Below, piece after piece: positions 35,721 through 47,972 of a stretch of 64,000 bases of DNA. The first letter of the stretch is position 1. The number at the start of each line of letters is the position of its first letter. The notes below the pieces were generated by a model. It did not search any database, was not told the origin of the DNA, and saw only the letters and a list, made by a program, of their open reading frames with translations. The DNA is from Eutreptiella sp. 'Long Island Sound 2002' (Eukaryota > Protista > Euglenida): NCBI GenBank assembly GCA_964036045.1, contig OZ038378.1:180916001-180980000 (forward strand). The letters are read 5' to 3'. A program made the translations under genes and the position numbers.

Positions 35721-37107
35721 TCAGCCAAAGCTTAGCCTGCCGGAATCGAACGTCCTTGTATCCGTCGACGTCCTTGTGGAGGTGTACGAGGGGGTCCGTG
35801 TCAGCGTCGCGGTCGGCGAGGGCGTCATCGACGGCGTCTCCGTCCCCGACGGAGGCGGAGTGCCACTCGCAGTACCGCTCACGGTCCGATCCGGCGACGC
35901 CGTACCCGTCCGCGTCGCAGACCACGTAGCCGTCCGGGTGCCTGTGCGCGTCGCCGTCGGCGTCACCGTCGGCGTCACTGTGTCCGGCTGCTGGGCCGTC
36001 AGCCCAACCGGCACACACACGGCGGCGGCCACAACGCCCGTCACCACAGCCCCCGCCACCAGCGCCCCCGCCACGAGGCTCGTTCCCGTCGCCCCCGCCA
36101 CCGCGCCCCCCATCCCCGCCGACACCGCCGCGTCCGCGACGCGCGCGCCCACGAGCCCGAGGTCCCACGGACCGCCCTGGAACGGCGCCGCCAGCCCCGC
36201 CTCCGGCAGCTCCGGGAACGCGTCGAGGCCGGGCCCGGCGTCCCGCACCCCGAGAAGGTCCGACCCGCTCCGTCTCCCGAACCCTTCCAGCGCGCGGACG
36301 TCTGCCTCGGTGTAGAGCCGCAGGCCGCGGCCCCAGGACACCACATTGGTACCTCCGAGGCCGGGGTTGGGGGGCGGGAGGACCACATGGACGTCGGGGG
36401 ACAGTAGAGGTCGCGGTCGGGTGCCCGGGCCATCCCCGGACTCCAGTCCGTGGGGTCCCCCCTGTTGGCGCATCCCTGGGGGCTCGCAGGGGCCACCCCG
36501 GACCCTCGGGCGCCACGCACAATCTGCCGGGTCCTGCCCCACTGGGGGCTGAGACCCGGACCCACGGATCAGCAGCGCTGCGGCATGGCTGCTGCGACAC
36601 GCGCCTCCGGGAACGTCCGGGAACGGCGGCGCACGCGACACCGCCCAGCCGCAGCGGGCCGCGTTCCCGGCGCTGCAGAGCTCCGATGCGCGTCGCGGCC
36701 CCTGCTCCGGCACGTCCGGGGGGTCGGCACACCCCCAGTGCGTCCGAAGGCCGTACGGCAGCAAGGGGGGGCCGAGGCCGTACCAGGGGTCGGGGGTGGA
36801 CTTGCCCTGGGCGGCGGTGGCCTGCAGCTGAGGACCGGGGGGGGCTCCAGCAGCACGGGGCCCTACCCAGAGATCAGGGGTCTGTTTTAGGGCCTGTGGG
36901 TGGTCCTGCACGGGATGTGTCTGCGGTCGTGAGGGGGGCACATGGGGCACGGACAACGGGGCATAGCCGGTCGTCGCAGGCACGCGGGCGCGGGGGGCTG
37001 GTGGGTCGACGGGGCAACTGTGGCCGCTGCGGCGGTCGGCAAGATCCCGTCGTTCGCACGCGTCGATGTGGATCAGGACCTTGTTGGCGAGCTCCAAATA
37101 GTCATCC
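35721..37107 (-). CDS. EF-hand/ART gene, probable last exon: Pro-rich linker, TM helix, Thr/Ser-rich stalk
   Basis: Acceptor cacag|G GAT at 37108 matches the phase-2 donor at 38407. The frame stays open for 1387 nt. Hydrophobic SLVAGALVAGAVVTGVVAAAVCVPVGL is followed by TPTVTPTATRT repeats. Whether it is joined to the ART exons is inferred. Confidence 0.6.
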
Positions 37108-38407
37108 CTGTGCAATTGTGCGTTGGAAGCAATGGGTCGGCCGCGGCCCCAAAATCCCCCCCCCCCAAGTCTCTTAGCAATAGGCTGCATCTAAATCCAA
37201 ACAGAAATCTCAACCCGAATCATGTTTCTACTTCCAATGCGGCTGCACTTGCAGCATCCCCATTTGGCACATTCGATTCCACGCCTTCTGCCCGTCTTCA
37301 ATGCCATTGACCACACAACTACCCCCACCAGAAAACATGCCCTTTTTAGGGGTTGAAAGCCACAAATCTTTTGGAATTTCGCAATTTCGAATCGAAAAAG
37401 TCACCTCGAAGAAGATACAGGATCAAAAGGAGGTGCAGGCTGAGATTCGAAACCCTCTGTCCTGGTGCGCTTCCGAACCCGCATCTACGATCGGCGAAGA
37501 ACCTTGTTCTGGAAGCATGCACGCTCGATGCCATTGTCCCCTCACCTCATGACTGTGGAGTTGGTCACAATCGAAAAGGGGGGGCGGGGGTCCCGATGGG
37601 GATCAATGGTCAACAGCAAGGTCTGATCGACGTGCTGCGGGTTTGGGTAGTGGAAGGGGTAGTGTGCCGAGGCCCATACACCAACCGAATGCCGAAACTG
37701 TGCTGGCCCTGCATGTTCCCTGGTTTTGTGATTGCTGCCCGCCACGAGCTTCATGGAAATGGCACCTCAGCACTACAAACCAGAGCAAACATCAGAGGGA
37801 CACATGGGAAGGGACTGCCTAGTTCGGGCTGCAAGAAAAAAGCAGTAAAGCTTGATGAAGATTGGGAGGCAGAAAAATACAACTGATTAGTCACACTGTG
37901 TGCAGAAGTGGATGCACTGGCAAAGGTGGCCGTCGAGAACAATGACAAGGAAGTGATCCAGGCCCAACACTAGACTCAGCACACAAAATCACTGCTTTAA
38001 AGCCTCTGAGATCTAAATGGACGGTTGATTGTGCCTGGGACCCCTCCTCCAAAAGCTCCATTGACCAGACCCTCCAAAGCCCCCTTCCCCCCCAGGTCGC
38101 CTGCGGGTGTCCCAGACCCCAACTTTCAGAAAAAATGAAATGTTGTTTTTGGAATCAGGTCTGGCAAAACCATCAGTCGTCTGGGATTCAGACCATTTTG
38201 GACCAAAAAATGTTTCTTTGGCACCGGATTTCATAGTAACTGATTGATGATCCTGGTCAATAGGGTCCCTGAGCCCCCACCCTCCCTCGGGCTCCATCTC
38301 CCCACCCTCCCAGCCCCAGCCCCCGCAATCGAAAATCCGCTGTGCCCTGGGATCTGAAGTGCTTTGGGGGCTTGGCTGACAACCGGACGCTCGGCACACT
38401 GACGCAC

Positions 38408-38646
38408 CGAATAACAGGGGCATTGTGCCGGAAATCCCACAGATGGTACACACGGAAATCGTAAATCGCCTTGCCTTGGGCACCGTCCAGATCTTGGTGC
38501 TTTCCGGAGTGGCGACTCTGCACTTGGGGCACCAGGATGGCATTACTGGGCAACAGCACCTCTGATTCACTGGGGTACTGAGACACCCATTGCAGGTCTG
38601 CCCCATTAGTAAGCAGCCCAGTGTCATCCTGAAGGTCCTGCCCAGT
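38408..38646 (-). CDS. EF-hand/ART gene exon with the catalytic E-x-E loop
   Basis: Acceptor ctttccag|ACT (phase 0). GADLQWVSQYPSESEVLLP. Candidate donor CG|GTGCGT. Confidence 0.8.
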
Positions 38647-39360
38647 CTGGAAAGCGATAGAACGGGTTACCCGGAGGGTATATGGAGGGCATGGCACATG
38701 GGCGTACAGGGGGTATACGGAGGGCATACGGGGGCATACGGAAGGCAAAGAGAAGGCAAAGAGAAGGGCATCGGGGGGCATACGGATGGCTTCCAAAAAG
38801 CATGTGGCGGCCATGCGGAGAAAATACACAGGACACATCCAGAACCTCTACCCTTTGATTTTTTTTGTTCCGGCACACCAAATCAAAGTGATCTCTCGGG
38901 CAACAGCCCGGAGTAGCGCATATAATACAAATTTTAAAAATAAAGACATATAATTTTTTCCCCACGGACAATGTGGTGTGAAGTTTAAGCTCTTTCGGCC
39001 CGCACAGGTCATCCCTACGCGGGGCTTCAGGTCACAAAAAATTGCCCATGCACCCCAACAACCGACTGGCATTTCACTCACACGGCATTTGGATGTCTGA
39101 GTATCCCATTTGCTGCGTGTTGCGGCAGGTTGACTGGATATGCGACCTTTGGTGCATCCAATAATCAAGTGGGGGAAACCGTGCTTGCCTCTGAAGTAGC
39201 CCTTTCACAGGGAACAAGGGCAGGAAATGATGTGTGACCCGCAATCAATGGCGCAAGCAAATTGGGGTGCTGCTGTGGAGCTTGTCACATTGCACTTTGC
39301 AGTTTGGACACACATGCACACATACATCTACACACGCACACAGCCACACACATGCACGGA

Positions 39361-46661: not shown

Positions 46662-46749
46662 CTGAAGGCTCAAGGTCAGCTGTGCAGGGCAGCAGGGGGG
46701 AAACCCCTCCAACCCTTCAAGCACATGGCCTCTGGGTAACATCGCATAC

Positions 46750-46890
46750 CGCAGGCAACTCAGCTTCATGCAGAGCTTGGAATGCTTGAAGCTGGCCATA
46801 AGTCACTTTCCCATTCTTCTCGGTATCCAGCAGGCCAAACACCAGATCAAGCTCGGCTTCTGACGCGCACCAACCGAAATGCTGCACGAA
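46750..46890 (-). CDS. EF-hand/ART gene exon (EF-hand 2)
   Basis: gcttcaag|TTC...GCG|GTATGC. ELDLVFGLLDTEKNGKVTYGQL. Confidence 0.8.
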
Positions 46891-47850
46891 CTTGAAGCAA
46901 AGTACAAGAGGAACATTATGACACCCGCCCCGAGAGACAACATAGGGACGTACAGGGTCCCACGGGCTAGACAGCACAAGCCGCACTCCAACACAACACA
47001 CAGCTGAGACCCAAAACGGATGGTGGCTATGCAGAGCCGTGTTGGCCCTTCCGGGGGTCTAGACATCATCTTGCACCATCCCTCATTAGCTCATCTGACC
47101 AAGCGTCAAAGAGGTTTGCACGCCGTTGCGGCTGGATGCCGTTGACACCCCACCCCCATGCCCGCGGCTGGCCAAGGTCAGCAACCGCCAGGAACCGCCA
47201 GCCAAATTGGCAGACTGGGCCACACCTAGCCACAGCTACCGGGCCGCCTGGCGGGCTTGGCGGCTGGCTGGGGGTGGCTGGCCATGGAAACCCCCCACCC
47301 TAAAGCCCCAGCCCGCTCCAGTGGCCAGAACACCCTCCGTGGGGAGCCCACCGGTAAGGGGACCAAGCAAGTTTCCCTGCGCCCATTCGCTACTCGCGAG
47401 ACCGTACGCCGTTGTAAAGAAGGGGGGGGGGGTAATTTGGATTTAGCGGCGGAACACGAAAGACAAACGCAACTTTAGGCAAGGAGCAAGCCATGGGATG
47501 CACCCTTCCGACCGTTTCGGCTTCTGTGAATGCCCATGAATCACGACCGATTGTTGTGTGCGCTAGCCCCTTTCTTCTGAAACAACCATCGCGCAACCCG
47601 CACCCTTGTCGACGTGAACGGTGAGCGCTGCTAATGCATTGGCCTCGAATCCTTATTTCCACCAAAGCACGAGCACCCTCCTATTCCGCTTGTCACCAAA
47701 GGCCACCGAGTCATCAGGCACGTGGCCCAATCCACGCCTGTGTGCGCCCTCACATGGACGGGGAAAACAACGGTTGCCCACATTCCACCCGTACAATGCA
47801 CGCGCAACTCCCTTGGGGGGCGAGGTGCGCCAAACCACCTCCATCCGCAC

Positions 47851-47972
47851 CTGCTCCTTGTAAATGTACCCGCTATGTTCCACATCGATGTCTTGGAACG
47901 CCGCTTGCAATAAGTGCCGGCGAAATACGGGGTTGATGGCCGTTTCCAATCGCACACTAGGCGCCGCATCGT
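47851..47972 (-). CDS. EF-hand/ART gene exon (EF-hand 1)
   Basis: cttgtag|AC...CAG|GTGCGG. LQAAFQDIDVEHSGYIYKEQ joins FVQHF of the next exon to complete the EF-hand. Confidence 0.8.

Follow-up and report, generated by a model that had tools for sequence, protein, structure and literature searches.

The stretch analysed here, referred to as the window, comprises 64,000 nucleotides from Eutreptiella sp. 'Long Island Sound 2002' (C1:180,916,001-180,980,000 of a 2.28 Gb assembly whose contigs are labelled Cn in this text). Its minus strand carries, from 47972 down to 35721, a gene of eight exons. The encoded protein is predicted to have ~880 aa and to be composed of a short amino terminus, a degenerate EF-hand pair, a helical linker and an R-S-ExE mono-ADP-ribosyltransferase (ART) domain of the ExoS/HopU1/ARTC type, which would be followed by a Pro-rich disordered linker, a juxtamembrane module, a membrane anchor near the carboxyl terminus and a Thr-rich disordered tail. 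Gene model and enzyme assignment both stand on solid ground. For the complete reading, that of a euglenid gene coding for a membrane-anchored EF-hand ART with an R-S-ExE triad, the probability is estimated at about 0.7.

Spliced gene model and intronless paralogs

The eight exons are all bordered by AG and GT (8/8) and have a summed length of 2,597 nt. They yield a frame of 864 codons plus the stop codon (35721-35723) that stays in phase through all seven junctions, its homologous part starting at 47970 (frame 2 of exon 1). The donor sites of the seven introns are GTGCGG, GTATGC, GTTCGC, GTGCCG, GTATGT, GTGCAA and GTGCGT, while at six of the seven internal acceptors a C/T-rich tract precedes CAG, the acceptor consensus of conventional introns in Euglena gracilis (PMC11170887). 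Exons 1 (47851-47972) and 2 (46750-46890) code one EF loop each. Exon 3 (44770-44918) begins a conserved helical linker domain with GDPRYLEYPSLLAGIKL... that continues in exon 4 (43405-43544; PPS..WL..ME.EW...HWDY..P.P), the two exons being 58-74% and 56-70% identical to the paralogs, respectively. The amino-terminal helices of the ART domain are encoded by exon 5 (42706-42892), its core with the catalytic Arg and the S-T-T motif by exon 6 (41219-41450), and the ADP-ribosylating turn-turn (ARTT) loop, the E-x-E motif and the end of the fold by exon 7 (38408-38646). Exon 8 extends from 37107 to the stop codon.

The window exons were searched and aligned one by one, intact open reading frames (ORFs) of paralogs serving as full-length proxies. 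Exon 7 as the sole query retrieved paralogs on C12, C17 and C15, the latter contig with three in tandem (E 1e-17 to 1e-21). They are single open frames of 789-1,034 codons that code, with no introns, the EF pair, helical linker, ART domain, Pro-rich linker, pre-membrane module and hydrophobic region; a Thr-rich tail ends most of them, not all. Each window exon was aligned separately to the paralog ORFs and to four Euglena transcripts. The alignments are colinear across L010 (C12), L012 (C15), L020 (C17) and the Euglena transcripts, and the same order of parts is found in L013-L014 and in the homologues P0002-P0006. On L012, exons 1-7 occupy in succession residues 22-56, 57-100, 107-142, 144-189, 191-251, 253-329 and 331-408; on L010, exon 7 stops at residue 429 and exon 8 starts at 431. 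Exactly one residue is absent from the exon alignments at each split codon and none at phase-0 junctions, a colinear match between exons and paralog sequences that cannot be due to chance. All seven junctions, including that between exons 7 and 8, are confirmed by this back-to-back mapping on intronless ORFs.

The original prediction of eight GT-AG exons joined in phase into ~865 aa is thus borne out by exon borders, open frame and colinear paralogs. Its link between exon 7 and the exon with the membrane segment, which relied on phase match only, holds as well, paralogs and transcripts running across this junction with no gap. The motifs that it quoted (the EF loops, LRLYTGPGYEPLNKSLR, LLRG, GFVSTT, QYPSESEVLL and the Pro-rich linker) were all found in their assigned places. 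Exon 1 stands for its borders and EF loop 1, but its TAG acceptor at 47972 is doubtful, given a better CAG acceptor at 48021 to which the exon may extend.

A further line of evidence comes from the 5' flanks of the paralogs. The euglenid spliced-leader (SL) sequence ACTTTCTGAGTGTCTATTTTTTT is present without mismatch (25/25 bases) immediately 5' of the L010 ORF (L010:442-466; C12, ~24.2564 Mb). In L020 (minus strand of C17, ~27.9268 Mb) a 21/25-base SL relic occupies the same place and is followed by the same 5' untranslated region as in L010. The SL sequence is that reported in PMC6242988 and, for Eutreptiella, in PMC3621762. No SL relic was found in the window or in L012-L014. Because they are intronless and carry an SL relic, L010 and L020 are retrocopies of a trans-spliced, fully spliced mRNA, which shows that an ancestor of the window gene was transcribed and spliced likewise. 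Retrogenes derived from SL-trans-spliced mRNA are known for dinoflagellates; no report of SL-bearing retrogenes in euglenids was found. Such retrocopies can act as fossil cDNAs that validate spliced gene models of euglenids independently of RNA data. At the level of sequence comparison, the locus is confirmed as a real intron-bearing nuclear gene of a euglenid whose spliced model is right.

Note that intron 6 carries at 39308-40150 an (AC)39 run followed by ~125 copies of TGTTGT (762 bp, 91% matches), which accounts for the strong GC/AT skew of the 38-40 kb bin. A degenerate 11/21-nt repeat lies in the same intron just past the exon 7 acceptor (38672-38790), and an 84-nt unit is present twice, with 97% identity, in intron 1 (46442-46609).

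EF-hand pair and ADP-ribosyltransferase domain

EF loop 1 (DVEHSGYIYKEQ, 47851-47886) and EF loop 2 (DTEKNGKVTYGQ, 46792-46827) are recognisable, and the EF helix-loop-helix fold is present in the model of paralog L012. Pfam searches with single exons assign exon 1 to EF-hand_7 (E 0.017) and exon 2 to EF-hand_6 (E 0.0029), the overall range (E 0.003-0.03) being below cut-offs. The two EF-hands of the original prediction are therefore retained, as is its caveat that both loops have Gln at position 12. This residue makes Ca2+ gating of the window copy doubtful. The loops are canonical in E. longa P0003 and in E. gracilis P0005; Ca2+ control may be ancestral and weakened in the window copy, whose EF pair is more likely structural or weakly Ca2+-responsive. 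The high predicted TM-score (pTM) of the 439-residue model described below points to a single compact unit of EF pair, linker and ART domain.

Two exons of the ART domain match profile PF03496 in colinear order, exon 5 at profile positions 15-44 (E 8.6e-4) and exon 7 at positions 146-168. The paralog ORFs reach 36.7-40.2 bits (40.2 for the C17 paralog) and L010 scores 33.4, above the gathering cut-off of 23.4. By profile comparison, the family is a divergent branch of PF03496. The elements of the catalytic triad follow each other along the exons. Downstream of LRLYTGPGYEPLNKSLR (42735-42785, exon 5), the catalytic Arg lies in LLRG (41384-41395), the corresponding FRG of the paralog aligning with FRG of ExoT; the S-T-T motif is GFVSTT (41279-41296); and the ARTT loop QYPSESEVLLPSN (38542-38580) contains E-S-E at 38560-38568. 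A phmmer search with L012 against PDB sequences retrieved ExoT (E 0.003) and ExoS, with FRG/FRG and FFSTT/YLSTS aligned.

The AlphaFold (AF2) model of L012 residues 1-439 has a mean predicted local distance difference test (pLDDT) score of 81 and a pTM of 0.77. Foldseek retrieved with this model R-S-E ARTs only, namely HopU1, Plx2A, ExoS/T, rat ART2.2, C3, XopAI, Vip2 and SpvB (top hits with probability 1.0; E 5e-6 for HopU1 and 5e-6 to 5e-5 for the bacterial PF03496 enzymes; TM-score 0.5-0.6 on target length for HopU1, Plx2A, ExoS/T, ART2.2 and C3). Over the folded exons, identity between the window protein and L012 is 47-70%. The ART carboxyl-terminal helix of the window protein is encoded at 37041-37106 (H410-432 of the L012 model), in the first part of exon 8 (36357-37107), which then codes a disordered linker of ~210 aa rich in Pro, Gly, Ala and Arg. 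An R-S-E enzyme with E-x-E, as first proposed, is thus supported by the intact triad and by the ART fold of the paralog model, and the suggested comparison with ARTC structures, made with L012, places rat ART2.2 among the matches.

Within the R-S-E clade, E-x-E identifies arginine-specific enzymes and Q-x-E asparagine-specific ones. Arginine is the likely acceptor because of this rule and because the nearest structures are those of Arg-specific enzymes. On the same grounds, the window protein is predicted to have NAD+-dependent transfer activity with arginine specificity.

Membrane anchor, orientation and state of the window copy

The juxtamembrane module encoded by exon 8 (36156-36356) has the pattern GGTN..RLRLYTE.D...RPR..D.L....FP....PF..S.WDLG, whose invariant G, Y, D, R, D, P, F and W are kept in the E. 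gracilis and E. longa homologues. Next come a Gly/Ala-rich, weakly hydrophobic helix (36090-36161; LGLVGARVADAAVSAGMGGAVAGA), a strong transmembrane (TM) segment (36000-36080; SLVAGALVAGAVVTGVVAAAVCVPVGL, Kyte-Doolittle 2.4) and a tail of 92 aa (35721-35999, including the stop codon) that has 33% Thr in a (T-x)n pattern and is predicted to be disordered. The strong segment is found in every family member (Kyte-Doolittle 2.25-2.5). In all homologues it is preceded by the weaker Gly/Ala-rich helix, the two being separated by a charge-free loop of 4-12 residues; the first helix of the window protein is the weakest of the family, with Arg and Asp inside and a Kyte-Doolittle value below 1.3. No signal peptide was identified at the complete amino termini of L012, L010, P0002, P0003 and P0006, which are not hydrophobic. 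The ART side is consequently predicted to be cytosolic, as the original prediction had it.

The anchor may tentatively be regarded as a hairpin (monotopic or two-helix) that places EF-ART cassette and Thr-rich tail alike on the cytosolic side, the protein being then a membrane-tethered scaffold-enzyme and not a receptor. This arrangement accommodates the two helices with their short, Gly-rich, charge-free loop in all homologues and the lack of a signal peptide in any of them. It also suits the flanking charges, since in the window copy, L012, P0002 and P0003 a net acidic stretch of 30 residues precedes the conserved Trp of the module and a net basic one of equal length follows the strong segment. 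Furthermore, in homologues the membrane region is succeeded by WD40 or RCC1, domain types usual for cytosolic proteins, E. gracilis P0002 having at this position a canonical seven-repeat WD40 domain (196 bits). WD40 domains are almost always intracellular. The hairpin is weakened by the poor hydrophobicity of the first helix in the window copy, with its R and D, and by the low confidence (pLDDT 50) of the AF2 model of the carboxyl-terminal 237 aa, in which two helices are nevertheless seen (one at 89-108 of the model). In addition, N-x-S/T sequons are more frequent in the RCC1 tail of P0006 (1.9 per 100 aa) than in its head (0.3), which argues for lumenal exposure in that protein.

Rather unlikely is a receptor-like single pass in which a cytosolic EF-ART cassette is connected by one TM segment to an extracellular O-glycosylated Thr-rich stalk, with RCC1 and WD40 as ligand-binding ectodomains in homologues. 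The window copy does have a single strongly hydrophobic segment, the preceding one carrying Arg and Asp. The homologues also keep the amino-terminal cassette constant and vary the part that follows the TM segment, which is Thr-rich, Ser/Pro-rich with RCC1, or WD40. The sequon enrichment of P0006 points in the same direction, as do the extensin-like Ser-Pro runs of P0004 and P0006, which resemble secreted glycoproteins. However, the charges of the flanks are the reverse of those expected from the positive-inside rule for an N-in/C-out protein in the four proteins inspected above, a second hydrophobic helix lies 4-12 uncharged residues upstream in every homologue, and the canonical WD40 domain of P0002 would have to be external. 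The window tail contains no N-x-S/T sequon and that of L010 measures a mere 29 aa. The number of residues past the TM segment is 92 in the window gene and 29 to ~500 in the homologues. A (T-x)n pattern right after the membrane segment is common to the window, E. longa and E. gracilis proteins; farther on, the tails are microsatellite-like, with TRT repeats of differing copy number in L012-L014 and TA/TD in L020, while L010 ends after its 29 residues.

Of the topology first proposed, a carboxyl-terminal anchor with one strong segment stands, to which a second, weaker helix preceding it in all homologues has to be added. The Thr-rich ectodomain, or external stalk, is not supported in view of the two helices, the basic post-TM flank and the WD40 domain that follows the membrane in P0002, and the receptor-like reading falls with it. 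An extended version, in which "receptor ADP-ribosyltransferases" of type-II-like topology sense a cue by a variable extracellular part (a glycosylated Thr- or Ser/Pro-rich stalk, with or without an RCC1-type propeller) and control a cytosolic, EF-modulated, Arg-specific ART, is improbable. We know of no organism with a signalling output of this kind across a membrane; if true, it would represent rare intracellular R-S-E ART signalling native to a eukaryote. A role in defence is pure speculation.

Several observations weigh against the assignment of the locus to a functional membrane-anchored EF-hand ART. Both EF loops lack the bidentate acidic residue (Glu/Asp) at position 12. The single-exon PF03496 scores (19.1 and 10.8 bits) are under the gathering cut-off, and L012 (23.1), P0006 (22.4) and P0003 (20.3 bits) are just under it. 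The ART fold was shown by modelling of paralog L012 and not of the window protein itself. The 5' end is incomplete, as exon 1 has no in-frame ATG, and a tblastn search with six paralog amino termini against 47973-60000 gave noise (E 0.02 or worse), so that the window copy might be 5'-defective. Lastly, public transcripts, from databases of other species, include none that is close, the nearest being ~50-70% identical per exon.

Upstream of 47972 the frame remains open and paralog-like (WKAL vs FKAF/FKPF) for 16 codons, reaching the CAG acceptor at 48021, and the first ATG past either of the two possible acceptors opens another frame, which stops within exon 2. Since the start of the paralogs precedes this point by just 13-25 residues, a very short upstream exon with the ATG is expected. 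Of the 141 phase-compatible ATG...GT mini-exons that a scan retrieved, none is convincing; one candidate has a plausible length (ATG 48121, donor 48117, acceptor CAG 48021). A decaying or silent parental copy that has lost its start, with function carried by the retrocopies, would account for the missing ATG, the lack of a homologous upstream exon and the lack of a near-identical transcript, but is improbable: 864 codons in eight exons stay open, the catalytic and juxtamembrane motifs are kept, every splice site is intact, a short 5' exon with just the ATG and a few poorly conserved residues would evade homology search, euglenids also use nonconventional introns (PMC11170887), and the transcript databases searched come from other species.

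In the preferred reading of a membrane-anchored EF-hand ART, the EF-ART cassette, devoid of a signal peptide, would sit in the cytosol with the EF pair packed against the ART domain, and would use NAD+ to mono-ADP-ribosylate arginines of membrane-proximal targets. For the anchor, a helical hairpin that keeps the tail cytosolic would be about as likely as a single pass. The modification could be reversed by ARH-family hydrolases.

Relatives, known systems and genomic context

Judged from its sequence, the window gene is a member of an undescribed six-copy EF-ART-TM subfamily of euglenids. The juxtamembrane module is present at only six loci of this genome, and the window gene alone among them has introns. 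The subfamily order of EF pair, helical linker, ART domain, juxtamembrane module and TM segment is shared by the window gene, L010, L012-L014, L020 and P0002-P0006. The best public relatives are EG_transcript sequences of E. gracilis in EukProt and GGOE01 sequences of E. longa (36-52% identity), GGOE01 being the transcriptome of PMC6242988. E. gracilis transcript P0005 has no match above 56% identity in this genome, so that the E. gracilis strain in EukProt is probably not the source. A human origin is rejected in view of the euglenid SL relic, the at least 82 ART-like matches, the genome size of 2.28 Gb and the Euglena transcripts as nearest relatives. The homologous transcripts carry no annotation in the public sets, and the literature search retrieved no paper that deals with Euglena ARTs or with an architecture of EF-hand, R-S-E ART and TM segment.

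Six-frame searches of the whole genome gave at least 82 matches to PF03496 and at least 30 to the ADP-ribosylglycohydrolase (ARH-type) family PF03747, which suggests a large ADP-ribosylation toolkit in this euglenid. The abundance of ARH-family genes is compatible with reversible ADP-ribosylation but is no proof of it. The EF-hand fusion, the number of PF03496-like matches and the many ARH-type genes make endogenous intracellular arginine ADP-ribosylation plausible, for which a native, apparently cytosol-facing, membrane-tethered family of Arg-type ARTs would be a tractable case. Intracellular mono-ADP-ribosylation is attributed to PARP-family enzymes and, to our knowledge, the R-S-E (toxin-type) mono-ARTs recorded from eukaryotes are essentially the vertebrate ecto-enzymes. 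The catalytic domain is of a known kind, an R-S-E ART; what appears to be new is the combination of EF pair, helical linker, ART domain, juxtamembrane module and carboxyl-terminal anchor, together with the predicted cytosolic orientation in a eukaryote.

The closest known systems are bacterial PF03496 effectors and toxins such as Pseudomonas syringae HopU1, P. aeruginosa ExoS/ExoT and Paenibacillus Plx2A. They share with the window protein the ART fold, the LYTxxxYxxLNxxLR helix, the Arg in "RG", the S-T-S/T motif and the E-x-E in the ARTT loop. Among them, HopU1 and ExoS/T specifically modify arginine and work within the cytosol of eukaryotic cells. In contrast to these secreted effectors, the window gene is endogenous, intron-bearing and eukaryotic, its product adds the EF pair, helical linker, juxtamembrane module and anchor, it has no 14-3-3-binding tail or secretion signal, and identity is limited to 16-23%. 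Vertebrate ecto-ARTs (ARTC1-5, PF01129; rat ART2.2, PDB 1og3/1gxy) are likewise eukaryotic, membrane-associated R-S-E mono-ARTs with E-x-E, rat ART2.2 matching the L012 model with a TM-score of 0.6 on target length, and the metagenomic relatives P0007 and P0008 match PF01129. ARTCs, which act extracellularly, carry a signal peptide, conserved disulfides and a glycosylphosphatidylinositol (GPI) anchor. The present family differs in that its homologues have no signal peptide, the EF-hand/NAD+ side is predicted to be cytosolic and the anchor is a proteinaceous TM segment, the carboxyl terminus being a Thr-rich tail past this segment with no GPI signal. Clostridial C3 exoenzymes have the same fold and ARTT architecture, with Q-x-E (asparagine-specific, acting on Rho) where the window protein has E-S-E. 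NOX5/RBOH NADPH oxidases and calcium-dependent protein kinases (CDPKs) provide an analogy only, that of an amino-terminal cytosolic EF pair joined to a catalytic domain on a membrane protein; homology is limited to the EF-hands, and the window loops have Gln and not Glu at position 12. The 92 residues past the TM segment also set the protein apart from the tail-anchored class, whose single TM segment lies within ~30-40 residues of the carboxyl terminus.

Other partners in the wider ART family are ankyrin repeats (L021), RCC1 and WD40. Together with the EF-hand, these architectures would help to ask how such ARTs are targeted. In L021 (C11:28103000-28112999; plus strand from 3748) the same linker-ART cassette (QYPAEAE) lies in the middle of an open frame exceeding 2,084 codons and is followed by a long ankyrin-repeat array; the EF pair and the TM module are absent. 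The tandem paralogs L012, L013 and L014 (C15:14.807-14.841 Mb) are nearly identical intronless EF-ART-TM genes 14-17 kb apart that differ mainly in the number of TRT/TPT repeats of the tail, suggesting microsatellite-like length variation. Four identical truncated copies were found at C12:23992166, 24099802 and 24176941 and at C1048:48652. Each is a 512-codon frame that includes EF pair and linker but only the first two thirds of the ART domain. Their spacing is 77-108 kb, and they would seem to belong to a large tandem duplication of a genomic segment. The C17 paralog L020 is adjoined on the plus strand (7153-9477) by a 775-codon, AT-richer frame that could be the ORF of a mobile element.

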